A stretch of 64,000 nucleotides of DNA, taken from the NCBI RefSeq assembly GCF_902459465.1, contig NC_047064.1:18104001-18168000 (forward strand), written 5' to 3'. The notes below the pieces were generated by a model. The model did no database searches, was not told where the DNA came from, and saw only the letters and a program-made list of their open reading frames with translations. Position 1 is the stretch's first letter. Every line of letters begins with the position of its first letter. The position numbers and the translations under genes are program-made. The DNA is from Asterias rubens. Taxonomy: Eukaryota. This document shows, piece by piece, positions 21,374 through 63,708 of the stretch.

Positions 21374-22219
21374 CTACAGTTTGATATCCGATGTTCCCTG
21401 ACCGTTCGAATAACCGTTTGATCCACGCTTATTGGCGCAGCATTCACAAAATATCTTCCTTGCCGAGAACTTCTTCAAATCGAAACTGAAGAAACCGTAG
21501 ACAATCGGGTTGATGGTGGCACTGACAGAGCTGATGGCCAAAAGAAACATCTCGAAAGGTGTCCGATCCAGCCTCCCCTCGGCGAAGTAGTGCACGATGA
21601 TCTGTACGGCATGGGTTGAATCAAAGATTGAGACAATCAGGGTGGTGATGGCCAACTTGATGACAACTCGACGCTGTAAGGTAGGTGATACCAACGGGCG
21701 TTTGCACAGTCTCCAGATAGTACAACCATACAGGATGATGTCTACAACGAGGAACAATGCACTGAGCACGAGAACTATGATCATCAAAGTGTACGGGCTG
21801 TCGAAGAACACCAAGACGCAAAGCTTGATCAGCCCACCACAGGCCAGTGCTACCAGCCAGCAGCCAGCGCAAACTGCTGCCAAGCGTCCATTGGAGTCTT
21901 GGCAAATGGACGAGAACTGTGTAAAAGTTGCGAGGAGGCGTTCAGAGGCAACGAGAATCACAAAAAGACCGGACGCTACGTAGCAGATGGCGAACAGGAA
22001 ACAGAAAACGCGTTTGAGGGGCTCATCTCTGGCACCGAAATGCGTGTAAAACACTGCGAGAATTAAGAACAAGACTCCGGCTACCGACAGGTTGCAAAGA
22101 ATGATGTTGAAGGGTGTTCGCATGGACTTGATGCGAACAACGAAAAAGACGAAAAGGGCGTTGGTGAGAAGGCCAAGTGGGCTCACCGCAAACACGAAAA
22201 TCTCTGCTGCGAGAAACAT
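21374..22219 (-). CDS. Intronless rhodopsin-like (class A) GPCR, orphan or putative chemoreceptor, 281 aa from the first ATG
   Basis: Seven hydrophobic segments; GLLTNA (TM1), TPFNIILCNLSVA (TM2), SERLLA (E/DRY position), TM4 Trp, INPIVYGFF (NPxxY). The frame is open upstream to 22258 but the first ATG is at 22219. Confidence 0.92.
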   Translation of the reverse strand: MFLAAEIFVFAVSPLGLLTNALFVFFVVRIKSMRTPFNIILCNLSVAGVLFLILAVFYTHFGARDEPLKRVFCFLFAICYVASGLFVILVASERLLATFTQFSSICQDSNGRLAAVCAGCWLVALACGGLIKLCVLVFFDSPYTLMIIVLVLSALFLVVDIILYGCTIWRLCKRPLVSPTLQRRVVIKLAITTLIVSIFDSTHAVQIIVHYFAEGRLDRTPFEMFLLAISSVSATINPIVYGFFSFDLKKFSARKIFCECCANKRGSNGYSNGQGTSDIKL

Positions 22220-22329
22220 ATTGTAAATGTAAATTTTAAAATTATTGCGGTTGCACACGCACTGTATCTGTGAATGTGATCAGTGTTGAGCAATATTACA
22301 ATTATTACATTGATGTCAGACCGCACCAT

Positions 22330-46000: not shown

Positions 46001-49000
46001 GTGACCTTAGATTTTTTAGAGTGCAGTTTTAAAAGCGGTTTGAAATATTGCTACCAAAGGAGACTGCTTAGGAAAAAAGTCTGGTAATGTTATTTGCAAT
46101 TATTTAGAAATGTGTCAATGAGTGCTATAGAACATAGAGTACAGATCAATGTTTCTAAAAGTATTTTCTTATAGCTTTTCAAAGCATATTTACCTCTGTT
46201 AGAACATTTTAACCAAAGTTGGTTGTGATTGGGTTCACATTCAAATGTCTGTCTTTACAATCTTATTTATCCCAGCTAACTGCGTTGATCCTGGCACACC
46301 AGCGTTTGGAAGTCAAACAGGGACGTACAAACATTCTGATGTCCTCTTCTTCAACTGTACGGTAGGCTACGACCTGATTGGAGCTGATCAACTAACTTGT
46401 AACAATGGAGTATGGACCAACGACATACCAACCTGTCAATGTAAGAAGAATTCCTGCCAATTGAACATTTTTCCCCCATTTGTTATGAAAACAACCCGAA
46501 CAACGCGAAACAAATTCACAAACGAGGACCTATAGGTCTTTCTTGTCAAGCTTATTTCCTCAATACTATCATGGCGCACACCATGAACTCTTCTTTGTTG
46601 TCAGTTTGTAGGTTAAACAAACAATTTTCAGCAGACTATTTTGAAAGTGCTTTTTAAGATGACATAGTTATGTATGTAGCCACTATAAACATTTAAATTA
46701 ACACCTCTCTTGTTATCTTATCCACAGTCAATTAAGAGTACTGAAATAATTAATCCTGACAGTCCAATTACTTGGTATTTTCTCATGACTAGACGTGCAG
46801 CCGCCGCTTGAGCCAACAGTAGCCCCAACACCTGCCGTTAATGAGTTGACTACCATTGACAGTCTGACCACATCAGCAGTAGAGGTTGTTGCAACTACTA
46901 AAGAAGAGTCAACAACTAAAGAAGCTACCACAGCAGAGTCAACCACTATAGAAGCTGAAGATGAATCAACTACAGTGGTAGTACAAGATTCTACAACCCT
47001 TGAAACGGAAGTTGAAGTCACAACAGAAGCCCCAGAACAAGAGTCAACTACTCAAACAGAACTTGACACAACTACATCTGCAGAAGAAGAGTCAACAACC
47101 CTTGAAACTGAAGTTGAATCAACTACAGTGGTAGTAGAAGAGTCAACAACCCTTGAAACTGAAGTTGAAGCCTCAACAGAAACCCCAGAACAAGAATCAA
47201 CTACTCCTGAAACAGAAGCTGAATCAACTACAGTGGTAGTAGAAGAGTCAACTACCCTTGAAACTGAAGTTGAAGCCTCAACAGAAACCCCAGAGCAAGA
47301 ATCAACTACTATTGAAACAGAAGCTGAATCAACTACAGTGGTAGTAGAAGAGTCAACAACTCCGGAAGCAGAAGGTGAAGTAACTACAGCAATAGACCAG
47401 GAATCAACAACTGCTGAAGTAGAGGATGACTCAACTACCGACAGTGAGACAGAGAACTTCACAACTGAGAATCCATCAGACGAGATCACTACGGAAACTG
47501 ACTTCACCATTCTCCCCGAACAACCGTTTACAACAGATGTGGACACAACTGAAAGTCAAACTAACAGACCACCAAGACCACCGATGTTATTCTGCCCACC
47601 ACTATGGCTCCATGTGCATGGCATGTATCGGAAAAAATACAAACAAGGGGATAAGGTCAGCTTCTCCTGTAAACCTGGTTTTACAGTTGTGGGCCCCAAG
47701 TGGATTGTCTGTTATGATGGGGAGTGGAGTGGTCCAGTGCCTGAATGCATACGTGAGTACCATTTTCAGACTAGAGAGCTGTATTCCATTAGTTTGCCAA
47801 GCTGGAACTCTCCACTACATCTTAGATCTTGTCTTTGTGCCACAAAATTCAAATCTCCTCTCAAAACTTATCTTACATCACTGGCTTTCAAGGACTAGTT
47901 TTGATTTGTCTGTTCTTTTCTTTTCTTTTGGGTTTTACTGCACCTTGAACACCCCGCTGGGTGGATATGTTCACATTACAAGTCTTTTTTTATTTATTTT
48001 TTATTAAGCTGTGACAGCCCAAACTATTATAATAGCTAGAAATATTATCCGTAGTTCGTCATGACAGAACATTTCAAAACTTGTAATTTTGGCTTCTAGA
48101 AAAAAATAACTGCTTACCCTACTCACTTTAATTTTCAATTTAATCATGCGTACTCTGAATTCTATTTTACAGCCTCTTGTGAATATGTTCCCCCTGCTCC
48201 TGAACATGGCGAGAGTCAATTCATACCATCTGAACGTCATCCTTGGGACGGCTTCAATTGGGAGAACTTACCACACCATAATCCATTGGAAGAACTATTT
48301 CCAGACTTGGACCTTGCTTGGAGTCGAACCCTACTTCGCGTCTTTTTGAGCTTGCAAGATGGTCGACTCACATGGGTTGAGATATTCAAGCTGTTCTTAA
48401 ATGGAATTCATCTCCGGCATGAAAACTGGCCGTGGAGTGCCGAGACACCTCTAGATCTTCCCAACATTCCATGGGCAGAGTTGCACCGGTTGATGCCAAA
48501 TGGCATTCCACTCGGAGATGGTAGTTACTTCGGATGGACTGAAATGTTTCTACAATTCCCAGATGGGGTTCCCTTTGGAGGTGATCTCCCATGGATGATG
48601 CCTGGGAAAGGGAGTCAAGGTGGAATGTCTTGGGAATCCGAATACCTGAGCAGTGTTTTTCCTGGAGATGAAGACGATGACAGTGTTGGTACGATTCCTT
48701 CTGAGGAGCTTCCATGGGAAAGTATGCTTCAGATGTTCTTCCAGTGGCTTTCAACTGAGTTGGGTGATTCTAGTCTCCTTCCTGGTGGGGCAGGTGGTGG
48801 TGTGATACCTGGCGATGGTGATGGTTCAATTGATCCCACAACTGTTGGAATAGCAACGCTCCTCGAACTCCTAAATGGGCAAATTCCATCCATAGATTTC
48901 GGAACTATTCCATGGCAGCAACTGTTGAGCCTGTTTCCCGATGGACTCTCATTCGCGGACGGACAGATTTCATGGGACCTAATTCTCCAGGTGTTTAACT

Positions 49001-52000
49001 TTTTGGGTGGCTCTGGGAATGTGATGCCTTGGAGTGGTGAAATAAGCGATGGTTTCTTCAATACAGGAGGTTTCGTCGTGACATGGGAAGACCTGTATCA
49101 ATTAACTCCACAAGGTATTCCATTGGGAGACACTACAATTCCGTGGGAAGTCCTTTTCGCATTGTATCCAGATGGTCCTCCACCTCTAGACGACTGGTCA
49201 CAGTTCATACCAACTGGTGGATTCGTTTTGCCTGGTGGTGGGTCCGGCAGTAATGACGTAACTCCCTGGAGTGGTGTAGTACCTGTGGGCTACCTAGACT
49301 TTGGAGATGGCATCATTACATGGGAAAATGTGTACCTATACTTACCAGATGGAATTCCAGTCGGAGACAAAACTGTACCATGGGAAAAGGTATTCGAGGC
49401 GTTTCCAGATGGGCCGCCAGCAACTGAAACTTTATACAGCTTTTTAGCCACTGCTGTAGAAGATGACAGAGAAGAAATATCCCCCTGGAGTGGTGTAGTA
49501 CCTGTGGGCTACCTAGACTTTGGAGATGGCATCATTACATGGGAAAACGTGTACCTTTACTTACCAGATGGAATTCCAGTCGGAGACAAAACTGTACCAT
49601 GGGAAAAGGTATTCGAGGCGTTTCCAGATGGGCCTCCAGCAACTGAAACTTTATACAGCTTTTTAGCCACTGCTGTAGAAGATGACAGAGAAGAAATATC
49701 CCCCTGGAGTGGTGTAGTACCTGTGGGCTACCTGGACTTTGGAGATGGCATCATTACATGGGAAAACGTGTACCTATACTTACCGGATGGAATTCCTGTT
49801 GGAAACAAAACTGTACCATGGGAAAAGGTATTCGAGGCGTTTCCAGATGGGCCTCCAGCAACTGGAACTTTATACAGCTTTTTAGCCACTGCTATAGAAG
49901 ATGACAGAGTTGACATAACTCCTTGGAGCGGTGTAGTACCTGTGGGCTATCTAGACTTTGGAGATGGCATCATTACATGGGAAAACGTGTACCTTTACAT
50001 ACCAGATGGAATTCCTGTCGGAAACAAAACAGTACCATGGAAAAATGTATTTGAGGCGTTTCCAGATGGGCCTCCAGCAACTGAAACTTTATACAGCTTT
50101 TTAGCCATGGCGGCTCAAGGAGATAGTATGATTCCCGAAGATGACAGTGCAGCAGTAAGTCCCTGGAGTGGTGTCATACCTATAGGTTACCTGGACATTG
50201 GGGATGGTAGCTTAACGTGGGAAACGCTGTTCCAAGGTCTACCGAAAGGTTTTCCATTTAGAAATGGAACCATTCCATGGGGAAAAATATTTATAGCTTT
50301 TCCAAATGGTCCACCACCAGTTGAAGATTTGTTGATGTTTTTAAGGATGTTTCAAGCAGGGAATGATATGAATCTTGGAGATGACATCGATGATGTCCGA
50401 GGAGTTCCATGGAGTGGCGTCATACCTAGAGGTTACCTAGACATTGGGAATGGTAATGTTACATGGGAGGACCTTTACCAGCGAATACCAGAAGGCCTTT
50501 CATTTTTTAATTATACGGTCCCGTGGGAATCCTTGTTCAATACATTTCCAGTGGGCCCGCCACCGATTGAGGACTTGTTAAACTTTTTCAGGATGGCTCA
50601 AGCAGGCAGTGGTGAAGTCCCGGTAAGACCATGGCGTGGTGTTATACCAGTAGGTTACCTTGGTATTGGGGACGGTAATGTAACATGGGAGGACCTCTAC
50701 CAACGTAAACCAGATGGCCTTTCATATGGAAACTATACGGTCCCATGGAAAAGGATGTTTAAAACATTTCCAGATGGTCCACCATCAGTCGAAATTTTGC
50801 TGTTCTTCCTCAGAATGGTCCAAGAAGGAAGTGGTATGACTACTGAAGAAATTCCAGTAAGACCGTGGAGTGGTGTAATACCTGAAGGGTACTTGGATAT
50901 CGGGGACGGTACTCTAACATGGGAGAGCCTCTATCAGCGCATACCAGATGGCATTCCATTTTTAAATTATACAGTCCAATGGAGAACCTTGTTCAAAATA
51001 TTTCCAGATGGCCCGCCACCGATTGAAGACTTGTTGAACTTTCTCAGGATGGCTCAAGCAGGCAGCGGTGAAGTCCCAGTAAGACCTTGGCGTGGTGTTA
51101 TACCTGAAGGTTACTTGGATATCGGGAATGGTAATGTTACGTGGGAGGACCTCTACCAGCGGCTACCAAATGGCCTTCCATTTAGAAACTACACAATTTC
51201 ATGGAAAAGATTATTCACAACATTTCCAGATGGTCCTCCGACTGTTCAAGAGCTGGTCAGACTGGTTATGAGAAGAATGACTCCTGGCAGAGCAGAGGAC
51301 AGTGAAGAAATGCAGAGTTCATGGAGTGGTATAGTTCCACAGGGCTTGTTGAATTTAGGGGATGGCAGATTGACATGGGAAGAGCTTTATCAGGCAATGC
51401 CAGAGGGTCTTCAAATTGGGAACTATACCTTTCCATGGAAGTTGTTATTTATGATGTTTCCAAATGGACCGCCACCTCCTGAGGATTGGTTGGAGCTTGC
51501 ACAGGAGGTAAGCGTGGGTCATGTTGCCTCAATTGATGAGACTCTGGATCAACAGAATGGAGGAGAAACCACCAGTGCTATAGCTCCATGGACAGGCCTG
51601 ATCCCTCAGGGATTACTCAATATTGGAGATGGTAGTATAACATGGGAAGATCTTGCTCTACTGATGCCAGACGGTCTGCAATTTGGAAATAATAACGTTG
51701 CATGGGGAGTCCTGTTTATGATGTTTCCAAATGGTCCTCCACTTGATGCTGCTGATTGGTCAGGTTTTTCACCACTTAGTCAGGCTGGTAATAATAATCC
51801 TCTGCAAGAAGTGATAGGACATATTGAGTCGTTTCCATGGGCAGAACTTCTGGATGTAGTCGTACCTTGGTTGCCATTTGGAGATGCTTTAAACGTTGAA
51901 ACTCCAGGAGACCAAGGGGGTTCTGGAGTGGAAGCACCTTGGACAGGGGTTGTTCCACCAGAACTTTTTAATTTTGGAGATGAAACTTTGACTTGGGAAC

Positions 52001-55000
52001 AGCTAATGCAGATTATGCCAAATGGTATACCTTTTGCTGATGGAATCATTACATGGGAAGCTTTGGTTGAGCTCTTTCCATCTGGAATACCTTCTGAACT
52101 TCAAGAGTGGCCATGGGCATTCGAAATGGCTCCCCATGGTGGTTATGAATCGTCTAGCAGTCACAGCAGTGTATCTGGAAATCCAAATCAGTTAGCAGAG
52201 GTAATTCAACCGCTTCTTGACCACTTGTGGAGCGGCCAAATAGTGATTGATTTAATATCGCACTTTGGAGCAGGTGAAGTACCTTGGGAACCAATGGCCT
52301 TACTCTTCCCGAATGGCATTTCTTTTGGAGAGGGGGTACTGTCATGGGAAGTACTGAAAGAGATGTACGAAAGCAGTATTCAACCAGGAGAAGGTGGAAT
52401 GGTGCCCGGCAATGGAGGCGGAAGTGCAATGAGACCAGAAAATGGAGAGGAAAGTGGTATGAGGCCTGGCAGTGGAAATGGTAATGGAACAGGACCTGGG
52501 AACGGTATGATACCTGACAACGGGAATGGCATGATGCCAGATGGCGGAGGTGGCATGGGGCCTGGAGACAAAGATGAAAATGCACCGAACTTCTGCGTCA
52601 GGCTGCCTTTCGGTAAATTTTCACCATCACGACGCGGAGGAGGGGGTGGTTTGATGCCAGAAGATGGTAATGGCATGATGCCAGATGGTGGAATTGACAT
52701 GATGCCAGATGGTGGATTTGGCATGATGCCAGAAGATGGTAGTGACATGATGCCAGATGGTGGAATGGGCATGATGCCTGGTGGAACGGGCATGATGCCA
52801 GACGGTGGAACAGGCATGATGCCAGACAGTGGAACGGGCATGATGCCAGACGGTGGAACGGGCATGATGCCAGATGGAGGAACGGGCATGATGCCAGACG
52901 GTGGAATGGGCATGATGCCAGACGGTGGAATGGGCATGATGCCAGATGGAGAAATGGGCATGATGCCAGAAGATGGGATTGGCATGATGCCAGAAGATGG
53001 GATTAATGGAATCCACAATGCCTGGAGAAGAGCACCTGCGGAAGGCGATTCAGTGAAATACTCATGTTCACATGGCTTTGTGATGATCGGAACACCCTTG
53101 CTAACCTGCACATGTCAAGGAGTCTGGGATAATCTACCACCCAGGTGTAAAGGTATCTAAACTTTTTGACACTTATAATGTGTGCGAATTTAATTTCGGA
53201 AGAATAATATAATTAGTTATCCAGAAATTTAGCTTAAATCCATATGAAAATCTGGCATTTTTTGTTGACTTGTCTTGATCTTGTTTGGAGTGATAGCATT
53301 TTTATTTACTTTACCAAATGTAAATTTTGAGCGCAACTCTGCCACATTACCTACTAATGTAAACCAACTTAAATATGGTTGTTATTCCACGTAGGTGTGT
53401 TCACCACAACAACTACCCCAGGTTACACCCAGCCAATTGCAGAGCTGACAACAATAGATACACCACAAGGTAAGCTTCTAGTCATCCAGTGAATTTCAAT
53501 GTATGTATATTTTTATAAAACAGTCATACGCCTAAAATTGAATCCAAGACACCGAAAGCAATTGCCGTAGAGCCCTATGCTTTTTGATGTAGTGCCCTTT
53601 AGAGTTTCAGTACAAATTTACTTTTTCCTCAAAGAAGAAAAGCATTACATAGAGATAACTGGTGTGAGTTGCCAGAGGAAAAGGATATCACTATTCTGGC
53701 CTCTTTCTATAATGAAGGTCTCCCATAATGATGTAATGTATAATGTTATCTAATTGACCAAAATGAGAGAAAATATTTAGAGCATTTGTTCTGTCTGTCT
53801 TTTCAAATTTTGATAAGCGAGTGTCATTTATCATTTATATTTGCAGACCCATGCTCTTCAAACCCTTGTGCTGAGAGAGCAAACAGTCAATGCATTTCCG
53901 AAGGTGGAGCTTTCAAATGCCCCTGCCTACTATCTTTCTCCGAGTCCAATGGCCAGTGTACTGGTAAGAGAAGCTTTGCATTTTTTCCAAGTATCTTTCC
54001 TGAAGGGTTTTCAAGAGTAATTATTAGGCAATGGGTTGTTCCGTTAATTCCTGTACATGTTACACTGCTAAACGACTCAAATACTGGAGCATAGCCAGAG
54101 GCCAGTAATTTTCATGTCAGGCCACTAAACTTTTGACCAGATGCAAGTCAGATGGTCTTGCGTTTTTTAATAGAAGAATAACCCAACACCTCACTGACGG
54201 ATGATGCCCACGCCTACATTCGTGTGTACCGTATCCGTATGGACTTTAAAGGGGGTAACCCTGTTTCAGAACCAGAAGTATGTGGCAACGGCACAAAGTA
54301 GATTGTAGCCCACACCTTGAAGTGGCCTCTAGGCATTGTGTGTCTGGCGACTTGACTAAAAATAAACATTTTAAAGAATGGGTGTTTTCCATTTTGTCCA
54401 CAAATTGTTTTGCATTGACGGTGTATTGGGCTGCATTGGTAAGTTATGGACATTTAATCCATTGTGGTGTCTGCTTCACTCACATTTTATTCAATTGTAT
54501 ACACAACAAATCTGTAGCAATTGCTAATATAATTATTATGTTCCCATTCCAGAATCAAAAGCATTCAGTGGCAATCTCAGAGTGACTGGGTTAGGCGGTC
54601 AGGGAGTTGAGTTTAGTGAGGAACTGGCAGATCCGTCCACAGAGGCTTTCCAGATGCTTGCTCAGGGCATGGAATCCATAGTAAGATATTTTCAAAGGTT
54701 TGATCAAACCTTTATCTTATATTTTTATGTTAATATATTTCAAGGCAAAGTATATCTTTTGTTTTTGGAACTGTTTGTGTTTTATTTTAATAGCACTAGA
54801 CACTATTGGTAATTACCCCCAAAAACTTGTTTGCATAAAAATTTAATTCTTGGTAATGAGCAATGGAGAACTGTTGAAAGTATAAAACATAATGAGAAAC
54901 GGCTCCCTCTGAAGTTACCCTATTTTTGAAAAGAGGTAATTTCTCACTCAAATAAGAAACGACTTCAGGGCAAAAGCCTTTGACTATGCATCTGTGAAAG

Positions 55001-58000
55001 CTAACACACAAAGTTGTGCAACACACAAATTTGTGCAACAAGTGTTTTTTCTTTCATTATTCTCTTGCAACTTCGATGACCAATTGAGCCCAAATTTTCA
55101 CAGAATTTTTATCACTATACTAGCAAAGAACCCAATGGAGAGAAGACAGGGAAAGATGCTTCGATTTTAGATTTGGGAGGAAAAGCCCAGGGAAAATATT
55201 CCAGGGAAAACCCACCATAGGGTATGGACTGGAAACCCAATCCAAATAGTGCTCTCAGCGGGACTGAACAGAGCGAGGAAAATATACCACTATGGAAGCC
55301 AACCCTATTGCCCCTTTTACACTTTGGTTTAATAAAATAATATGTTTTTCTTTTTCAGATTGATGATATATACATGAACGGTAGCCTGTCAGACAATTAT
55401 CTTGGAAGTACAGTCACTGGTTTCTCAAATGGTTCGATTGTTGTTGACTACATTGCCAAATTCACAGAGGAGAATGGCACAATAACCAATTCAAGTGCTG
55501 TAGATTCAGCTTTCAAAGCAACTTACATGGAAAGTGTCGAAAGCGGAAGCCTTAATGTCACAGTAGATGTTGCAGCCAGTGGAGTAACAGGTATAACATC
55601 AGTTTTAAAGGCAAAGCATACCTTTGGTTTTTGGAGCCGTATAATTGTTTAAATCATATATAAATGTACACTTATCGGGAAAACTAACCTGTGAAGATTT
55701 CATTTCAACAGATGGTTGCTTTTTTGAGATATTGATGAAAATCGTGACTAGTTATGTCTCGAGGCAAGAAGAACAATCGGTAATTGGAATACACATTATG
55801 GATAAACAGTTCTCAGATTCAAATTTTGGGGCATAAAAACTTACACATTTTTACAAAACAACATTACACCTGTCTCTTTAGATCATGAGATGACTTGTAT
55901 ATATGACAATTGAGGTATGGTATATTATGTAAGATAAATAACAATGGTACACAGATTCAAGACTACTGAAAATAAATTGTTGCATGATGCATGATGCTAT
56001 AGTGCAAACCTCACCTCCAACTATGCAAAGTTTCATATCCTACATCCGTATGGACTGTAAAGGGGGTAACCCTGATCAGCCCCAGGAGTAGGTGGCAACA
56101 ATAGTTGATTTGTAGCCTACACCTTGAAGTGGCCTTTAAGCCTGGTGTGTCTAGTGTCTTACATAAAAAAACAATTGTTTGAATTGTACTCACGTTTTTT
56201 TTCATCTGTCTCTTAGATCTGGATGAGTGTCAATCAGCCAGCGACAATAATTGTGCTTCGGATGCAGAGTGTATCAACATAGATGGTTCATTCACTTGTA
56301 GGTGCAACTTTGGATTCGTCGATAACACCCCAGAATACCCAGGACGAGTCTGTGGTAAGATGACAGAACATTAAACTTTACCCGGGCTGATTCATTTTAT
56401 AATGTACAGGAAAGAAGCATCTGTTTCAGACAGGCGCTCCAGAGGCCCGCTGAACCAACTACTGAATTAAGTAAATTGAAAAGTGTGACGTCTGAAGCAG
56501 TTAGAAGTGACTGGACATGCTAGAAGTCAAAAGATCGACTGTTGCTTTTGTTCGGAGCGACTCAGGAGCGTCTTGGTTTCAGACGTTGATCTTGTCATGA
56601 GCCCAACCAATGTAAATGTTTAAGTTTGGGTAGACCTACATGTAGAGTCGCTCCTAATCTATTTGGTTCGGCGCGACTCTGGCGTGCCTGTCTGAAACCG
56701 GTTGAACATCTTACATATTGTCACGTAGAATGTCGTGGCCGAGTGGTCTAGTTCACCAGACGCAAGCTATGGTATTCTTGGCAGCAGTGTGGGTTTTAAT
56801 CCTGGCAATGACACTTGTGCAGTTGAGCAAAGCACTGACCATATTTGCTTCTTAAAAGGTTGGGCAGGTAGTGCATTCTGCACTACCAACCAGGCTCCTA
56901 GCGGATGATCATGATGATACCCAAGCCAACATTCCCACAGACTGTGAATGGGGGTTACCCTGTTTCAGGCCCTGGAGTATTAAGTGGCATTAGCCCCTGG
57001 GGAGCACTGCCCTGGTGGCAGTTAATTTGGGTCGATAGCCCAAATCAGTTAGGTGTAGTACTCATACCTTGAAGTGGGCCGTTCGGCCTTGTGATGTCAG
57101 GCAATCTCTCATACCTACCATTATGTTTTTAGCTGGTAGTATCTTGTACAGTCAGTTACAGGACGAATGACTTTTGACTGACACTCCCAAACAAACCTTA
57201 TTGACAAGTAAATGGAGATCTAGGATCTGAGGCATTGCATGGTGAGGTATCAATGTACATTTGGTTTGCGGTAACACCATGTGTGTATCTACTTGCCAGG
57301 TAGAGTTGTTCTTAGGGAACTGTCTTGCTTTATTCTACTGCCGCGGAGAAGATAAACGGAGGTTCGGGAGACTTCTCAGTTCTGAAAAGAACTGTCCTTC
57401 TTTTTAACTATTACCAGGGCGGATGGTATAGAAATTACTACTACTTTACTACTACTTTAGCTTACAGGATCGTAATTAACTGTACTGCCGCAGAGTCAGT
57501 TCAGAACTGGTCCCAATGTTATATGGAGATCGCCAAAGTTAGGGCTAGATAGCTCATCAGTTTGTAAGGCACCAGCATGTTAACCTGGAGATCGCAGGTT
57601 CAAATCGGGCTAATTAAATCCGGCTCTAGTAGATTTGTCTTTGTTCAAGCCAAAATGTTCAGTCAGTTTTCCTTGTTCAGTAGTTATGTTTATTAAACTT
57701 GTTATTTTTTTTCAATATTTAAACTGTGTTTACTTTTTCCTTCCAGAATTACTGGTAGTCGCCACAACAAGCCCCTCATACGTTGAGTTCACAACAGATG
57801 TTGAGTTCGTAACAGATGTTGAGTTCGTAACAGATGTTGAGTTCGTAACAGATGTTGAGTTCGTAACAGATGTTGAGTTCTCAACAGATGTTGATGACGA
57901 CAACTTCAAAATGACAACGATGACCAATGAACAAGAAATGACGGAGGCTTTTGAGGAAGCAACTATCATGAGCGAAATACTGTTCACAACACGAGATATT

Positions 58001-61000
58001 GTTGACGAGGCCACCGAAGGTGTAACTGAGAGTCCGGAAGAGGTAATATTATATTTATTGCCCAAACCGACTGACCGAACAGCCATGCAATTACAAGAAA
58101 AGGATAATACACAATATTCATATTGCCAATATACATGTAATATCTCTTGGGAATGCTCTCCCACTGAACTAGTAGACACTCTCTCCAGCTTCAAGACCAA
58201 CTTGAAAACTCATTTGTTCAGTCGTAGCTTAAAGTACCGTCATTAAGCAGAGTTCTTTTCTATGCGCCAGGAGTGTCTTCCTAACAGATATGGCGCACTA
58301 CAAATGTCCATTATTGTATTACGTACATAAAATTGAAGCAAACATTACAATTAATTAAATAAATTACAATTGGGAAAAAGAACAATAGCATTATAAATAT
58401 ATTTATAGGTAAGGACAACACAGGCCGAGCCCGAAGTAACAGAGGAACAGAAATCTCGGACAACACCTGTCGATGAGTCAGAATCGACAACACCAGAAGA
58501 GGAAGCCGGCGTCGAGCCAACTGAAGGAGTGAGTGAAGAGCCAGAGTTGGAAATGACGACAAAAAGGGAGCCTGAAGTAACACACGAATCTGAGTCTACG
58601 ACAAAACCTGCTGACGAGTCTGAATCGACAACATCAGCAGAGGTTGAACCCACAGAGCGTGTGACTGTTAAGCCAGAGGTGGAGAGTACAACTGAAGGCA
58701 GGTCTGAAGTGACGCTAACAAGAACGAGTAAACCTGAGGAAAATACCACCAAAGCAGTTTCAGTTGCACCCAAAAGCCCTGAAGTTACAGGACAGCCTAT
58801 TGGTAAATATCAATGCAACAATGTTTTCCTCTACATTGAATGCTAATTAAAAAAAAAAAAAAAAAACACTCGATCAACATTCAATTTATAAGGGGCCAGT
58901 CTAACAGTCTTTGCTCATAGCGCTGTACAATAGGCTTTTGAAAAAACGGTGAGAATTAAGCAAAGATTTAAAATTGGCTAATGGATTAGATGCCTGATGT
59001 TCTGAGGAAGATGATTCCACATCCTTGTTACTGCTGCAATAGAAAAGGCACGATCCCCCTCAACTGCACTTGGTTCTTTCAATGTGAAAGTTTAGGAACA
59101 GGAGGGCAGATTTCTTACAGGTTCTTTGATGGACAATATTTACCACTGCCAGGATTGCAGCAGACGCTGACTGCTGACCTTTTTTAAACCATTTGATCAT
59201 TTCAATGCTGTGTAAATATAGATACGTACAAACAAAAACGTATCTGACATTAATGTTTCTCAGATCAAAATTTCCAGGGGGATAAACATTTTGTTCTCAT
59301 AATCACATTATTTTAAAGTGAAATAGTTCTCAGATTATTTTATACTATCGAAAGCTGCAGCAGTTCTGTCTAAGTAATTCCATGTTTCAAGATTGATTAC
59401 CAAACGTATACATGTACAGACCCTCTTTACAAGACATTTATGACTACAAATGTATATCCTTTACTTTTCAGATCCGTGTTTCTCAGATCCGTGCGCTGGC
59501 AAAGCAAACAGTGAATGCATCTCCAAGGATGATGGGTCGTACACATGTTCCTGCATAGCTCTTTACTATGAATCAAACGGCCAGTGTGTAGGTAAGAATG
59601 AACACTGTCTGAGTAATTTAAAACCTCGACTTGAGTAAGTGGTGTTTGAAGCTTTGGATGGTGTGGAGAATAAGAGTAACTATAAATATAAAAATGAATA
59701 GTAGATTTGCGGGTACATCCATGTGTAAATCTCTTTTGAGGGAGATTGGTCGCGATGTTCGTAACAGTATACTATCCTCGTCTTCAGGAGAATGAGCATT
59801 TTATGCTATCAAAAATTTTGATGCTAATATTTGTTGAGTACTTATTACCAAACGTGTTCAGTGCTTCTAAGCTGGGCCCAATTTCATAGAGCTGCTTATA
59901 AGCACAAAATTCTTGCTTAGTAAAATCAGATTACCGGCCAAGACTCCACTCATTTGGTATGCTAAGTAAACAACAGCTAAATACCATTCACAAGCAATGT
60001 ACGATTGCATGAAATTTTTGCCAGTAACATGTGTAAAATAAGCGGCCTATTTTCGTGCTTAACGACACTGGACACTATTCATGCTATTGGTAATTCTCAT
60101 TTGGTGTATCTCAACATATGCATAAAATAACAAACCTGTGAAAATTTGAGCTTGATTGGCCGTCACAGTTGCGAGATATTAATGAAAGAAAAAAACACCC
60201 GTGCAACACGAAATTCTGTGTTTTTGGATGCTTGATTTCGAGACCTCAATTCTAAACTTGAGGTCTCGAAATCAAATTTGTGGAAAGTTACCTCTTTCTC
60301 GAAAACTACGTCACTTCAAAGGGAGCCGTTTCTCACAATTTTTAATACTATCAACCTCTCCCTATTACTCGTTACCAAGCAGGGTTTTATGCTGAATTTC
60401 TTTTTGGAGTAATTACCAATAGTGTCCACTGCCTTTAAGCAACATTTTTGCTTAAGCAGCTCTATGAAATGGCCCCAGCCCTTTGATTGGGCACAGGCTG
60501 CCAGTAATACTTACATGTGCATCATGATGTTTATTTCTGTGGTGTACATTTTAGCTTCCTCAACATTCAAGTGCCGTCTACGTGTCACTAGGATTCAGAC
60601 CTTGCAGGCAGAGTTCACTGCTGAGCTGGCAGACCCAACGTCTCAGGATTTTCAGTCAATGGCTGCCGACATGACATCTGTCGTAAGTAACAAGATATTT
60701 TAATTTTATAACGCTTTACACTGGCGAAAAATCTACAAATAGATAAATTAAGATACATCAGAAAAAAAAGATTAAATTACCAAGTCAGTGAGTGGCAAGG
60801 AAGAACAGGTGACCAGCACCTCTACAAAGCCGTCCTGCCACAAAAGAATGTCTCGTTAGACCAACCCTCAGTTTAAAAAAAACACCATCCCTCAGATAAA
60901 AAAAATAAAAATAAAAATAAAAGGGGAGGGGGGTCTTGAAGGCAGAACTGACAATTCTGAACAACAACAAGAGCAGCAACAATGTGACACCCAAGTGCAA

Positions 61001-63708
61001 ACATCATCCACTGAGAAGTCAGGTACAAATTTCTCCTATATACATATTATATTGAAGCAGAAGAGTCTTAAATAAAAATTATAGGTCAAATTCACTTTGT
61101 TGTAAAGCAAAGGTTTTTGAGCTAAGGGACACTTTTATGAAAACCGCTTGTGGCTGCTGTGGTCTCTAAACGGTTAAGAAAAACATAAACCAACCTAACT
61201 GTTGATTTGATATTCGTTAAAAAAAATTAAATTTTCCAGACATTGTAAAATTGTTAGTTATGTTGAGGCCTGAAAGACATGTCTGTCATTTCCTTTTTAG
61301 ATTGATAGTATATTCATGGGGAGCCGTATGTCAAACCAGTACCTTGGCTGCACCATTTTTGGATTTTCAAGCGGCTCAATCATCGTGGACTACATTGCTC
61401 ACATTGACGATGTCGAACCAACCAATTCCACTGTGGTGGAGTCTGCATTCACAGAGTCTTACATGCAAAGTGCAAACGACGGGAGGCTTAACGTCACTGC
61501 TGATGTTGCAGCTAGCGGAGTCACAGGTAATGAGGCCATGTGTAAAATTGATGGCTTTCAATGGCAATGCTGCAATTCCAGAGCAAAACAGCCTAAAGCC
61601 TTGTTCATAGTTCCTGTGATTGTGAGTCAATATGTTGACGTCACAAATTGACAACGAACAATTCGCAGCAGTTGAGTTGTGCTCAGTTCTCAACAACAGA
61701 GTTGTGACCTCAAGTTCACGTCAAATTCGCTTCGCATTCGCAGTTGCAGGATGTACATGTATGAACCGGGCTTAACTAAAAAATGTTGGTTTCCTAGTTG
61801 TTTTTTTTGGGGGGGGGGGTAAATTGAAGGCGTTTTTTCTATTTCAAAGTTTCAAAGGCAAACTATGTTTGGGTTTGAGTATAATATATCTTGGTCTCTT
61901 TATACACACTTTCATCCGTTTTATTAAAGGCAAAACAGCTTTATCTCTGTACTTTTCTCAAATTGTAACTTTTCAAGTTTTCTCAATTTGCCACACTCCA
62001 TCTCTAGATTTTGATGAGTGTCTATCCACCACGACCAATGATTGCTCGGTCAATGCCAGCTGCATCAACATTGAGGGAGCGTTCACTTGTGAATGCCACT
62101 CTGGACTTGTTGATTTGGCCCCGACAAAACCAGGACGATTCTGCGCAGGTAAGATTTTCTATATTTTGACTCTTTCAAGTAGAGAGATAATAAGTAGGAT
62201 TTGAAACTTTGCATGGCGGAAGTATAACTGAGGTGAATATACCTCTCTCCTTTATGAGCTATGTGGTTCTGAAAAGAACTGGTGGTTAAGGATCGGACCA
62301 TACTGATCAACACACAGGACCAACGGCTTAACGTCCCAAAGACGAAGCAACATTGGTGAAATGTCTTGCTTAAGAACTTGTGTCAAAAAACCCTTCTGTT
62401 AATGATAGTGTACCCAGTTTTTTTTTAAGGTGCATAATGTAGCACAACACACTGGACCTGCTAGAGTACAAAGCAAAAATGTTTCTAAAAGTATCTACTG
62501 CAGGACACCAGCGTCAAGACTGGGACTCAAACCCACATTCCGCTAACTGCGAGTGGAATCAACAGAGAACGACTCGAGTGTGTTTGACCACAACTTTTCA
62601 CTGTTAATAGAACTTAGTGGGTTTTTTTTCTTTGAAGTTCACACCAAGCAAGGCTAAAAGCCACTCTTGGTATGGGGCTACAAGAAGAACAATCAATGAA
62701 GCGTAAAAAAACTTGGGGGAGCTGAAGGTAATAAATTGATATTAGGTAGGAATTGATATTCCTCTTAAAACAATCTAGATTGTAGGATGGAGGGAAGCAT
62801 GCATCAGGCAGGGAGTTCCGATAAGATGTAGTACGTGGAATAAAGCTGTGTGAATGGCGGCTTGTACTACATCTCAGCAGATAAAGAGTGTATGGCTATG
62901 AGAAGAAGCAGAAAGTCTAGTTTTACGCTAACAAACTCTGATAGAACGAACTGTGTTTTATTCTTTGCTCCAGCTCCTCAACCTAAAGTGTGCGACAATC
63001 AAGCTGATATAGACTGCTCACCGTATGCTGCCTGTTACGACACTGACACACGCCCAGAGGGTTATAGCTGCCAGTGCCTCTCTGGCTTCCGTGATCAATC
63101 CCCAAGTATCAGCCTCATGCCGGGTAGAGTCTGTGAAGGTAAAATAGAGCTTGTTATAAAGAAGCATCTTTTTAGCTTTGATTTTGGCCATTGGCTTTCG
63201 CAAGGAAATCACATAGCTTTAATGATAATAGCAACAATAATATTAATAATAATGGACATTTGTAGTGCGCACTATCTGTCAGAAAGACATTCCAGGCGCT
63301 TAGAAATAAATTTTGCTAACGACGGTACTTAAAGCTTTGGCTGAACAAATGAGTTTTCAAGTTGGCTTGAAGCTGAAGAGAGTGCTACTAGTCTGAGGTT
63401 CAGTGGGAGAGCATGCCAAAGAGATGGTCCAGCATTTAATAAGGAACAGTCTCCCCAAGTGTCCTTAGATCGACGGGATATTAAGGAGCATAGTGTTTGT
63501 AGAGCGAAGCTGTCTGGTAGAAACACTTTGCTGCGTTGAATCCTGGATGTATCTTGGAGATGTACCATGTTTAGGAGTAGAACCATTTGGCTCAGAATTT
63601 TCATTCAACTGTCACTTTGTTTCTGTCTTTAGAAATTTGCCCTTCCAGTAACTGTTTCAACGGAGGTTCCTGTGTGAGTGTTTATGAGACTGGAGAAACA
63701 ATATGCAG
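33869..63708 (+). CDS. Giant mosaic extracellular, probably membrane-tethered, mucin-like protein: sushi x9, giant repeat exon with split sushi, EGF-SEA-cbEGF x2, further EGFs; 23 exons, 3'-incomplete
   Basis: All 23 exons have AG/GT boundaries and join in one frame (9520 nt); domain signatures read directly from translation. Confidence 0.88.
36477..36779 (+). mobile_element. tRNA-derived SINE, near full length (related copies at 25676-25860 and 56728-57105; 3' parts at 54205-54365, 56035-56172, and 1530-1700 on the minus strand)
   Basis: A-box TGGTCGAGCGG, B-box GGTTCGGATCC, shared 3' body GGGGTAACCCTG...CACCTTGAAGTGGC, A-rich tail. Confidence 0.85.
38188..38566. mobile_element. Kolobok-like MITE nested in an older related element (about 38050-38770)
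   Basis: Perfect TIRs; TTAA at 38184-87 and 38567-70. Confidence 0.88.
39537..39707 (+). CDS. Sushi/CCP exon 2 (DCSDPGAPTDG...CIDGSWSLPNPTCS)
   Basis: 171 nt, phase 1-1. Confidence 0.95.
40216..40386 (+). CDS. Sushi/CCP exon 3 (DCGDPGTPASG...CEGGSWSRDVPTCL)
   Basis: 171 nt, phase 1-1. Confidence 0.95.
40834..40998 (+). CDS. Sushi/CCP exon 4 (NCVDPGTPGNG...CSDGSWSNSIPTCE)
   Basis: 165 nt, phase 1-1; absent from the ORF track. Confidence 0.95.
41080..41352. mobile_element. 149-bp Harbinger-like MITE inserted in reverse orientation into a copy of itself
   Basis: Inner copy 41141-41289 has AGGCC...GGCCT termini and TAA duplicated at 41138-40 and 41290-92. Confidence 0.8.
41440..41655 (-). mobile_element. 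tRNA-derived SINE of a second family, degenerate (related piece near 62300-62600)
   Basis: Minus-strand head GTTGCCGAGCGGTTAAGAGCACCGAAT; body GGGACGTTAGGCCGTTGGTCCCGTG. Confidence 0.65.
43122..43286 (+). CDS. Sushi/CCP exon 5 (DCVDPGSVVNG...CRSGAFDGVLPVCY)
   Basis: 165 nt, phase 1-1; conserved Trp replaced by Phe. Confidence 0.92.
44147..44311 (+). CDS. Sushi/CCP exon 6 (DCVDPGTPESG...CDAGSWSNGLPTCL)
   Basis: 165 nt, phase 1-1. Confidence 0.95.
44760..45070 (+). mobile_element. Degenerate RTE-clade LINE 3' fragment
   Basis: Interrupted translation KKWRWADH...ARWACETT...DW*TAQDRVKWR resembles the RTE ORF C-terminus. Confidence 0.72.
45190..45354 (+). CDS. Sushi/CCP exon 7 (NCTDPGTPEFG...CANGDWSNSVPVCK)
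   Basis: 165 nt, phase 1-1. Confidence 0.95.
46276..46440 (+). CDS. Sushi/CCP exon 8 (NCVDPGTPAFG...CNNGVWTNDIPTCQ)
   Basis: 165 nt, phase 1-1. Confidence 0.95.
46793..47752 (+). CDS. Thr/Glu-rich mucin-like stalk (105-bp, 35-aa repeats) followed by sushi domain 9
   Basis: 960 nt, phase 1-1; ESTT-rich; ends FCPPLW...FSCKPGF...CYDGEWSGPVPECI. Confidence 0.92.
47101..47400 (+). repeat. Coding 105-bp tandem repeat (ESTTVVVEESTTLETEVEASTETPEQESTT...)
   Basis: GAATCAACTACAGTGGTAGTAGAAGAGTCA at 47116, 47221, 47326. Confidence 0.9.
48173..53152 (+). CDS. Giant 4,980-bp exon: sushi N-half, Trp/Pro/Gly repeat region, GMMPDG array, sushi C-half
   Basis: ttttacag acceptor at 48172, AAG|GTATCT donor at 53152, open frame of 1660 codons, phase 1-1; includes ORF 48286-53160. 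Confidence 0.9.
49027..52140 (+). repeat. Coding tandem repeat, 13 units of at least 219 bp (73 aa) beginning PW[S/R/T]G
   Basis: Unit starts at about 49027, 49264, 49483, 49702, 49921, 50161, 50407, 50629, 50863, 51085, 51319, 51586, 51937; units 2-5 are near-identical with exact 219-bp period. Confidence 0.93.
52651..53010 (+). repeat. Coding 24-bp minisatellite, ~15 x (G)MMPDGGx
   Basis: GGCATGATGCCAGA recurs at 24-bp spacing. Confidence 0.95.
53395..53469 (+). CDS. Short Thr-rich linker exon (VFTTTTTPGYTQPIAELTTIDTPQ)
   Basis: 75 nt, phase 1-1; ELTTID motif shared with the start of the 46793 stalk exon. Confidence 0.85.
53847..53963 (+). CDS. EGF-like exon (PCSSNPCAERANSQC...CPC...SNGQCT)
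   Basis: 117 nt, phase 1-1, six Cys. Confidence 0.93.
54553..54680 (+). CDS. SEA domain 1, N-terminal exon (SKAFSGNLRVT...FSEELADPSTEAFQMLAQGMESI)
   Basis: 128 nt, phases 1-0; F-x-x-E-L-x-D-P-x-S/T-x-x-F SEA motif. Confidence 0.92.
55359..55590 (+). CDS. SEA domain 1, C-terminal exon (GFSNGSIVVDY)
   Basis: 232 nt, phases 0-1; GSIVV autoproteolysis-type motif. Confidence 0.92.
56217..56354 (+). CDS. Calcium-binding EGF exon (DLDECQSASDNNC...CINIDGSFTCRC...PGRVC)
   Basis: 138 nt, phase 1-1; D-x-D-E-C and C-x-N-x-x-G-S-F-x-C. Confidence 0.94.
56421..56700. mobile_element. MITE, TIR GTTTCAGACAGGC
   Basis: Imperfect ~40-bp inverted termini. Confidence 0.7.
57747..58042 (+). CDS. Acidic Thr/Glu stalk exon with (TDVEFV)n repeats
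   Basis: 296 nt, phases 1-0; 18-bp tandem repeat. Confidence 0.85.
58409..58802 (+). CDS. Thr/Glu/Pro-rich stalk exon (VRTTQAEPEVTEE...EVTGQPI)
   Basis: 394 nt, phases 0-1; an in-frame alternative acceptor is possible at 58424. Confidence 0.82.
59472..59591 (+). CDS. EGF-like exon (PCFSDPCAGKANSEC...CSC...SNGQCV)
   Basis: 120 nt, phase 1-1; paralogue of the 53847 exon. Confidence 0.93.
60063..60434. mobile_element. Kolobok-like MITE nested in a CTGGGCCCAATTTCATAGAGCTGCT-type MITE (59872-60478)
   Basis: TTAA at 60059-62 and 60435-38; host TIRs CTGGG(C/G)C(C/A)ATTTCATAGAGCTGCTT on both sides. Confidence 0.82.
60555..60682 (+). CDS. SEA domain 2, N-terminal exon (SSTFKCRLRVT...FTAELADPTSQDF)
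   Basis: 128 nt, phases 1-0; paralogue of the 54553 exon. Confidence 0.92.
61301..61526 (+). CDS. SEA domain 2, C-terminal exon (GFSSGSIIVDY)
   Basis: 226 nt, phases 0-1; paralogue of the 55359 exon. Confidence 0.92.
62008..62148 (+). CDS. Calcium-binding EGF exon (DFDECLSTTTNDC...CINIEGAFTCEC...PGRFCA)
   Basis: 141 nt, phase 1-1. Confidence 0.94.
62765..62935 (-). mobile_element. Degenerate CR1/L2-type LINE 3' fragment
   Basis: Minus-strand remnant PRTTSYRNSLPDACFPPSYNLDCFK resembles the PRT..WNSLP...SYNL..FK terminus. Confidence 0.6.
62974..63138 (+). CDS. EGF-like exon (VCDNQADIDCSPYAAC...YSCQC...PGRVCE)
   Basis: 165 nt, phase 1-1, six Cys. Confidence 0.93.
63225..63590 (-). mobile_element. 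Degenerate L2-type LINE 3' end
   Basis: TWGDCSLLNAGPSLWHALPLNLR resembles GDRAF..AGP.LWN.LP..LR; followed by a GCGCACTACAAATGTCCATTATTATT tail. Confidence 0.72.
63633..63708 (+). CDS. First part of an EGF-like domain (ICPSSNCFNGGSCVSVYETGETIC)
   Basis: 76 nt, phases 1-2; C-x-N-G-G-x-C; remainder lies beyond the window. Confidence 0.85.

Follow-up and report, generated by a model that had tools for sequence, protein, structure and literature searches.

A tandem Trp/Pro/Gly repeat in a giant exon of a putative SEA-type surface mosaic gene of sea stars

What is the long tryptophan-, proline- and glycine-rich repeat in the genome of the sea star Asterias rubens, and to what kind of protein does it belong? 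The question was raised by a 64,000-nucleotide (nt) stretch of forward-strand DNA (NC_047064.1, positions 18,104,001 to 18,168,000; hereafter the window). An earlier note, made from the letters alone, had described there a repeated domain of about 73 residues that it could not assign to any family. We found that the repeat is a new protein domain, with no family or fold under which to file it, and that its host is a recognisable kind of surface protein. The overall reading that we consider probable is that the repeat region is an exon of a sea-star SEA-type, mucin-like surface mosaic gene, and that this exon encodes an amplified array of a folded, Trp-rich mini-domain.

A transcribed exon under purifying selection

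The repeat region lies in a 4,980-nt coding exon that is spliced and transcribed, evolves under purifying selection and has been conserved across three asteroid species. The sole long open reading frame (ORF) between 46 and 55 kb lies on the plus strand at 48286-53160 and has 1,624 amino acids (aa). Across the window that holds this 1,624-codon frame, the G+C fraction was 0.36-0.46 per 2 kb. The exon itself, 48173..53152 (+), has exactly 1,660 codons and is in phase 1-1. It starts before the first listed start codon of the ORF (48286), with the acceptor ..TTTTACAG|CC at 48172/48173 and the donor AAAG|GTATCT at 53152/53153. These limits were placed by the two splice sites, by splice joins in RNA and by tblastn, in which the alignment of the orthologue from Patiria miniata begins at 48175.

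Transcripts were taken from the RNA contigs of a 2014 run of the same organism, from the raw reads of two 2026 RNA runs and from marine metatranscriptomes. A piece of one RNA contig, 2,532 nt long, spans 50100-52609 without indels. A second contig splices 53152>53395 and 53467>53845, with GT..AG, and continues into the exon at 54553. Contigs from the marine metatranscriptomes match the repeat sequence at an identity of at least 99%. Among the 40 listed differences between transcript and genome, 25 were synonymous and 15 non-synonymous, with no indels. The ratio of non-synonymous to synonymous divergence (dN/dS) between paralogous units had a median of 0.22, at dS values near or above 1, which is near saturation; for units 2-5, dS was 0.09-0.30 and dN/dS was 0-0.18. 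The synonymous excess and the dN/dS of 0.22 among units therefore indicate that the frame is under purifying selection. One of the transcript differences, at position 50978, changes Gln898 to Pro, so that the T-V-Q-W of the genome copy of unit 9 becomes the consensus T-V-P-W.

A frame of this kind could in principle be a pseudogene, an assembly artefact or a non-coding satellite, and the four-unit, 219-nt sub-array within it, being 95% identical, is of a type that assemblers can mis-size. However, this explanation is effectively refuted by the 1,660 open codons, by the spliced RNA contigs in the independent 2014 library and the metatranscriptomes, by the orthologous RefSeq models in two other sea stars and by the excess of synonymous changes. 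The reading in the earlier note requires a translated frame, and the open codons, the GT..AG splicing and the synonymous excess all indicate that it is coding.

The repeat unit and its relatives

The array comprises 13 full units of 73-117 residues each. They start at ORF residues 248, 327, 400, 473, 546, 626, 708, 782, 860, 934, 1012, 1101 and 1218 (nt 49027 to 51937), and the pattern [PSA]-W-[SRT]-G likewise occurs 13 times, at a spacing of 73-117 residues. An alignment of the 13 units with MAFFT had 12 invariant columns and a mean column identity of 51%, and a hidden Markov model (HMM) of the unit scored 58-120 bits per unit. Tandem Repeats Finder reported a period of 219 nt (3.9 copies, 95% match) and also one of 456 nt.

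Every unit holds two gap-free copies of a 21-residue motif, G-D/N-x-x-h-T/P-W-E-x-L-F/Y-x-x-h-P-D/N-G (20-21 residues; h, hydrophobic). With an HMM of this half-motif, the exon yielded 33 copies, of which 26 lie in the 13 units and seven, decayed, in the flanks; 20 shuffles of its protein gave 0-2. Five of the decayed motifs (exon aa 62-74, 97-113, 121-134, 178-188 and 243-260) lie in the N-terminal flank (48319..48996, +), with Gly/Pro/Asp-rich spacers between them. The spacer after unit 12 is 65 residues long and holds one more decayed motif. A C-terminal degenerate unit (LWSGQIVIDLISHFGAGEVPWEPMALLFPNGISFGEGVLSWEVL; 52228..52371, +) was matched by the HMM and has one-to-one orthologues in Patiria and Acanthaster.

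Ten positions do not vary among the 20 indel-free units taken from three species (the window species, P. miniata and Acanthaster planci): W2, G4, T19, W20, P28, G30, W40, P48, G50 and P52. The spacing of the core is fixed and indel-free over 52 residues, and the linkers have 8-65 residues. In the same 20 units, position 12 is Asp in 10, Asn in six, Gly in three and Ser in one; position 15 is Asp in 15, Asn in four and Gly in one; position 29 is Asp in eight and Asn in eight, with four others; position 35 is Asn in 13 and Asp in seven; and position 49 is Asp in 10 and Asn in eight, with two others. Such an interchange of Asp and Asn at putative turns fits Asx-Gly turn formers, and metal binding is thereby neither proved nor excluded. 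The earlier note had offered, as speculation, that the DFGDG and DIGNG turns might bind Ca2+, loosely like FG-GAP loops, and the results speak neither for nor against this. An N-x-T sequon stands at position 35, in the predicted hairpin turn, in eight of the 13 units, and three also have one at position 17; most of units 6-10 have sequons at positions 35 and 17. These sequons would agree with a secreted, glycosylated module.

The description in the earlier note was borne out. It had counted 13 units, and its consensus is identical, letter for letter, to units 2 and 3. The three flanking half-units that it quoted were all found, at ORF aa 61-79, 208-226 and 1332-1350, and the two copies of a motif of about 20 residues that it saw in each unit correspond to the gap-free pair. 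It had also seen three Trp and no Cys per unit; W2, W20 and W40 are all among the invariant positions, and the exon has no Cys between its residues 3 and 1473. We propose a candidate asteroid Trp/Pro/Gly repeat family, defined by a Cys-free core of 52 residues with W2, G4, T19-W20, P28-x-G30, W40 and F47-P48-x-G50-x-P52. The defining positions are invariant or nearly so in the 20 indel-free units of the window, Patiria and Acanthaster.

We then consider whether this family is already known under another name. In Pfam-A (2025 copy, family gathering cut-offs), no family matched the repeat, whether the whole exon or single units were searched (E up to 10), and the repeat regions of the orthologues gave the same result. 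On the whole exon, Sushi alone passed its cut-off, at the C-terminal end. The HMM built from the 13 units had 14 matches among 1.84 billion representative proteins (E up to 0.001). The convincing ones were two fragments of the window gene, an A. planci protein and a 252-aa fragment from Tara Oceans. Two word-indexed searches of 5.8 billion sequences found P. miniata and A. planci only; the second of them, seeded with the Patiria protein, added no species. No protein source-named as sea urchin, sea cucumber, crinoid or brittle star turned up in the homology searches. A feature search of the ESM Atlas with units 2-6 reached a best score of 0.69 and gave no related cluster. It had been suggested from the letters alone that the repeat is no known Pfam family and comes from an echinoderm; the first point is confirmed and the second supported, with sea-star sequences alone convincing among the proteins searched and orthologues from P. 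miniata and A. planci.

The Tara Oceans protein (P0006) is encoded on an 863-nt scaffold of plankton DNA (L003) and is orthologous to the N-terminal flank of the repeat region. Its sequence has IPWNQIFEMMPNGIPLG three times and then ...LIGLVSGTIPDP...IPWPQLFDMFPTGIRFADGEIS. The fragment hints that further species carry the gene. The weak HMM matches P0005, P0007-P0009 and P0011-P0014 were rejected as unrelated repeat proteins that have only P-D/N-G or W-E-x-L strings in common with the unit.

Could the unit be a very divergent member of a known family? EF-hand pairs and type I dockerins are duplicated loop-helix motifs of about 22 residues within about 70 residues. The repeat unit is similar to them in its length of about 60-70 residues and in its duplicated D/N-G-x-h-T/S-aromatic-E motif of about 20 residues with a short helix. 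EF-hand proteins gave sub-threshold matches to it in both sequence and structure, and dockerins gave none. The sequence matches were to PF00036 and PF13202, with scores of 13.4 and 10.1 bits (cut-offs 25.4 and 25.9), and they covered the second half of the profile only. However, the unit has no predicted entering helix, and its invariant Glu is one position off the -Z ligand. If G16 is taken as loop position 6, the ligand positions 1 and 3 are the hydrophobic residues L and I/F/L. FG-GAP was rejected as well, with no Pfam match, no propeller in the fold searches and a predicted unit of alpha/beta type with three helices, not a four-stranded blade.

The third candidate was the C-terminal domain of 5'-nucleotidases. 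Against the PDB, the unit profile matched human CD73 (NDGTITWENLAAVLPFGG) at an E of 0.035, and the half-motif profile matched it at about 0.4. The likeness is a string of 14-20 residues, D-G-x-I-T-W-E-x-L-x-x-x-L-P-x-G. It differs from the repeat in that the motif occurs once in CD73, and the fold searches gave no link to the repeat unit. The family itself (PF02872) had no Pfam match, and only CD73 entries were found, with no other family member. Two phage-like proteins, P0010 and P0015, matched the unit HMM at E of 3e-5 and 1e-3, and they were also rejected as homologues; they share only a string of 15 columns (VTWxDLYxxhPxG), and P0010 has no relative in the PDB. Both are 385 aa long, belong to no Pfam family and have about 7-8 repeats of h-T-W/Y-x-D/E-h-h-x-x-h-P-x-G-h-x-h, which resembles both the sea-star half-motif and the motif of the 5'-nucleotidase C-domain. 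P0010 (L001 1997-3154) is encoded on a phage-like contig, ENA ERZ28436104, and adjoins an M15 peptidase / peptidoglycan-binding gene. CD73 and the two phage-like proteins are best read as cases of local resemblance, by chance or convergence, to judge from these alignments. Considering that all candidates stayed below curated or significance thresholds, that neither FG-GAP nor dockerin matched in Pfam and that the structure searches returned neither 5'-nucleotidases nor dockerins, it is improbable that the unit descends from any of these families.

Predicted fold of the unit

AlphaFold2 (AF2) models were made for units 7-9, with an alignment of 14 rows, and for one unit, with an alignment of 27 rows from three species. 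The model of units 7-9 had a mean predicted local distance difference test (pLDDT) score of 77.9 and a predicted template modelling (pTM) score of 0.42, and it showed the same elements in each unit. Its cores reached a pLDDT of 85-92, and its linkers fell short of 50. For the single unit, the pLDDT was 86.6 and the pTM was 0.67. In the numbering of this model, P1 of the unit is residue 4. The predicted elements are a bridge at V8, a turn at 13-15, a bridge at T22, a helix at 23-29 that starts from the invariant Trp, a P-D-G turn, a hairpin (34-36 / 39-41), a helix at 43-49 from the third Trp, a second P-D-G and a helix at 57-70. Each half-motif is thus predicted as a strand, a 7-residue helix and a P-D/N-G turn. 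The N-terminal P-W-S-G-h-h-P is predicted to give strand pairing with the first half, as P-D-G-h-P-h does with the second. These models predict that the unit folds by itself into an alpha/beta mini-domain without disulfides. A small folded hairpin-helix module free of disulfides had been suggested before, and the AF2 prediction and the purifying selection both support it.

No structural neighbour was found by Foldseek in the PDB (E at least 4.7 for the unit and at least 1.8 for the trimer) or in the clusters of the AlphaFold Database (E at least 5.5, template modelling (TM) score at most 0.31). A shape search of the Atlas reached a best TM score of 0.44, and a wide search with VIA-align gave nothing above noise. 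The check by AlphaFold and Foldseek on one and three units gave a model for each and no neighbour. The absence of structural neighbours is weak positive evidence for a new fold, because small size depresses the scores, and good evidence that the unit is explained by no known domain.

It is also conceivable, although we think it unlikely, that the repeat is a disordered or elastomer-like Pro/Gly spacer of low complexity, as in mucins or abductin, and that the AF2 confidence is an artefact of repeat self-alignment. The region consists of 11.6% Gly and 11.0% Pro and lies between Pro/Thr/Ser-rich (PTS) stretches and a low-complexity GMMPDGG array; the pTM of the three-unit model is merely 0.42, and the alignments are shallow and rich in paralogues. 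However, a disordered spacer would hardly keep its hydrophobic positions and ten invariant ones, including three Trp, in 20 units of three species, nor show a dN/dS of 0.22 at saturated dS. A fixed 52-residue core without indels, next to linkers of 8-65 residues, is unusual for low-complexity repeats, and the contrast in pLDDT between cores and linkers arose within one model.

Another explanation is that the units assemble into a solenoid, a fibre or an oligomer with other chains, and the model of a single unit would then be misleading. The 20-residue periodicity is regular over the whole region of 1,300 residues, and PWSG-h-h-P mimics the P-D/N-G-h-P-h tail of the half-motif, which could permit strand swapping between neighbours. 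Yet AF2 gave no confident contacts between units in the trimer, with its linkers below 50, and the lone unit was predicted better. Considering also the variable length of the linkers, we give such an assembly little credence and prefer the autonomous mini-domain.

The host gene and the history of the array

The best homologue of the window gene is LOC119745597 of P. miniata (XP_038078003/XP_038078002; 2,598 aa), with 39% identity over the repeat region. The second orthologue, LOC110974526 of A. planci (XP_022081937), is a partial gene model. Both records are labelled 'uncharacterized protein', and the repeat is not annotated as a domain in either. The Patiria protein has, in order, a signal peptide, eight Sushi modules, a PTS stretch, a Sushi module, the array, Gly/Met/Pro repeats, a partial Sushi module, a PTS stretch, EGF, SEA, EGF-Ca, EGF, a transmembrane helix and a cytoplasmic tail. 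Pfam found Sushi (ten times), SEA (47.8-50.3 bits), EGF and EGF_CA in the orthologues. Mapped onto the window by tblastn and Pfam, this order gives eight single-exon Sushi modules at 33.8-46.4 kb, a PTS exon that ends in Sushi (46795-47754) before the giant exon and a small PTS exon after it. The SEA exons of the window have the motifs GSIVV and GSIIV, and a G|SIVV-type motif is where mucin SEA domains self-cleave. With a SEA motif, EGF modules, a transmembrane helix and PTS stretches, the host protein is, as judged from its sequence, a type I, SEA-type membrane-tethered mucin-like mosaic.

In the light of general knowledge of SEA-domain transmembrane mucins (MUC1, MUC3/12/13/17 type), the host protein is similar to them in its SEA motif G|S-[VI]-[VI]-V, EGF modules, single transmembrane helix, tail and PTS stretches. 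It differs in that its ectodomain is mainly Sushi modules and the Trp-rich repeat, not long PTS arrays, and in that the window gene carries two EGF-SEA-EGF cassettes. The four-exon EGF/SEA/EGF-Ca cassette is duplicated in tandem (53846-56353 and 59471-62144). The two SEA exons have about 70% DNA identity and both retain GS[IV][IV]V; the Patiria orthologue has a single SEA match. The second RNA contig reaches the first cassette, at 54553.

The exon is Sushi/CCP-like at both ends (S-C-EYVPPAPEHG ... PPR-C-K). Its start, S-C-E-Y-V-P-P-A-P-E-H-G, is a typical first-Cys segment of a Sushi/CCP module, and the piece to which it belongs (48175..48285, +) was read from the translation as Sushi-like because of its motif and the exon phase. 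It comes after the last Cys of the preceding Sushi module and a short linker of canonical length, which in Patiria (...PECRRTCDYIPPAPSNG) has four residues. The end of the exon, with C-K at the splice site, matches positions 22-56 of the 56 positions of the Pfam Sushi profile (PF00084, E 3.6e-05, 24.5 bits against a cut-off of 20.7). These C-terminal two thirds of a Sushi domain (53044..53148, +) include one extra Cys (TCTC). Thus the exon resembles a Sushi/CCP exon, with an insertion behind the first third of the module, in its phase 1-1, in its start (C-x-x-V-P-x-A-P-x-x-G) and in its end. It differs in that the first Cys lies about 1,590 residues from the second, where a normal CCP module has roughly 25-30, and in having an extra C1-like motif and an extra Cys.

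There are six Cys in the exon. A full CCP module has four Cys, paired C1-C3 and C2-C4, and the conserved Trp within about 60 residues. For the Sushi end, two C1-like starts were seen, at distances of about 1,630 residues (the start of the exon) and about 157 residues on the upstream side. A lone Cys at 52594-52596 stands in C-V-R-L-P-F-G-K-F, which is kept as CVRFPFGEF in Patiria and CLRFPFGEF in Acanthaster. The disulfide map is ambiguous because of this second C1-like motif (CVRLPFGKF) and the extra Cys. Since the exon is Sushi-like at both ends, the array probably originated within a CCP module, as an insertion, and the disulfides of that module may close the array into a loop.

Between the array and the Sushi end lies a low-complexity stretch rich in Gly, Met and Pro (52372..53010, +). 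Tandem Repeats Finder gave about 14.7 copies of a 24-nt unit encoding GMMPDGGx at 52652-53000; Patiria has about three copies and Acanthaster about six. Its Gly/Met-rich composition recalls elastomers such as abductin. RNA contigs break up over this array, and one of them skips 33 nt (52623>52657), which points to variation in copy number or a collapsed assembly.

The orthologues share with the window protein the mosaic order, the invariant W/G/P positions and the degenerate flanking units. They have six (Patiria) and four (Acanthaster, in a partial model) full units, compared with 13 in the window, and 3-6 GMMPG repeats compared with about 15. Unlike the window units, most of theirs are missing the C-terminal helix, and their linkers are short and acidic. 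For 26 units from the three species, a tree was built by maximum likelihood. Window units 2-10 form a clade of their own (support 92/98), within which units 2-5 are nested (99/94). The degenerate C-terminal units of the three species form another clade (WdegC/PmdegC/ApdegC, 100/99), and the second Patiria and Acanthaster units (Pm2-Ap2, 99/96) and Pm6-Ap4 (96/89) form pairs. Units 11-13 (starts 51319, 51586 and 51937; 51319..52152, +) fall, by alignment and tree, outside the window-only clade and among or beside the units of the other two species; they look older than the amplification. Unit 1 (49027..49263, +) is divergent, with an end branch of 0.96 and an unresolved position. Units 2-5 (starts 49264, 49483, 49702 and 49921; 49264..50160, +) form a young sub-array by Tandem Repeats Finder, dS and the tree, and their exact copy number may reflect assembly error. 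Units 6-10 (starts 50161, 50407, 50629, 50863 and 51085; 50161..51318, +) join units 2-5 in the window-only clade. The tree therefore implies an ancestor with a handful of units and decayed flanks, from which the window lineage amplified one unit ninefold. As reconstructed from this tree, nine of the 13 units came from amplification in the window lineage, four of them very recently.

How might such an array have been built, and what might it do? The motif of 20-21 residues would have been doubled to give the 52-residue core, preceded by P-W-S/T-G-h-h-P and, in the window species, followed by an amphipathic helix. The two halves of a unit would be zipped by the beta-hairpin, whose turn often bears an N-glycan sequon, and the units would be strung on disordered, mostly acidic linkers of 8-65 residues. 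The array would thus form a semi-rigid, N-glycosylated, beads-on-a-string segment of the ectodomain. It might serve as a spacer that extends or presents the N-terminal Sushi array or, in the glycocalyx of the epithelium, as a multivalent surface for binding. Self-cleavage at the SEA motif G|SIVV, if it occurs, would shed the array with the alpha-subunit, and the length of the array might be tuned by unequal crossing-over.

Some observations weigh against the reading of an expressed, folded and functional array. Raw RNA reads were few, 11 and seven in the two libraries. The AF2 alignments, of 14 and 27 rows, were shallow and consisted largely of paralogous repeats. Window units 2-10 keep the third helix well, and in Patiria and Acanthaster it is largely replaced by short acidic linkers; the 52-residue core may therefore be all that is conserved of the module. 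The two short candidate pieces for a Sushi start had no Pfam match when scored alone, which counts against a split Sushi module. A glycosylated, sheddable, beads-on-a-string spacer or binding array is a function read from the architecture alone, and a literature search by accessions and architecture returned no tissue, ligand or phenotype data for the gene. We hold this functional part tentatively, as something that may well turn out otherwise. Still somewhat more doubtful is that a new fold was born recently in the sea-star lineage, from a motif inside the loop of a Sushi exon that was doubled and amplified to 4-13 units, with the Sushi halves possibly closing the loop. On that view the module could be a glycan-binding, Ca2+-binding or mechanical domain of a new class.

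If the predicted fold is real, the repeat is an undescribed domain family without detectable relatives in sequence or structure. A single exon displays stages of its growth, with decayed single motifs, the doubled 52-residue core, old shared units and a young sub-array of four copies. If so, the locus would be a tractable case for the birth of folded domains by amplification of short repeats inside an existing domain exon, and for the disulfide-free stability of extracellular proteins. For echinoderm biology, it would be a surface glycoprotein peculiar to the lineage, with a repeat number that varies about threefold from species to species; this could matter for mucus, adhesion or host-microbe interfaces. 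The repeat is confined to a single animal class, and a specialist would be moderately surprised by it, because orphan repeat domains are not rare in invertebrate genomes.

Other features of the window were also recorded. Within the PTS exon before the giant exon, a Thr/Glu/Ser-rich PTS repeat at 46935-47389 has periods of 51, 105 and 153 nt (ESTT.ETEVE units); this exon ends in the ninth Sushi module. Between the two EGF-SEA cassettes, an ORF at 57635-58246 (+) encodes an acidic repeat with TDVEFV six times and then a Thr/Glu-rich stretch. It has no Pfam match and may be a further PTS-like exon of the mosaic gene. Upstream of the mosaic gene, on the opposite strand, an intronless ORF of 294 aa (21374-22258, -) matches the rhodopsin family of seven-transmembrane receptors (PF00001, E 7.5e-11, 42.4 bits).

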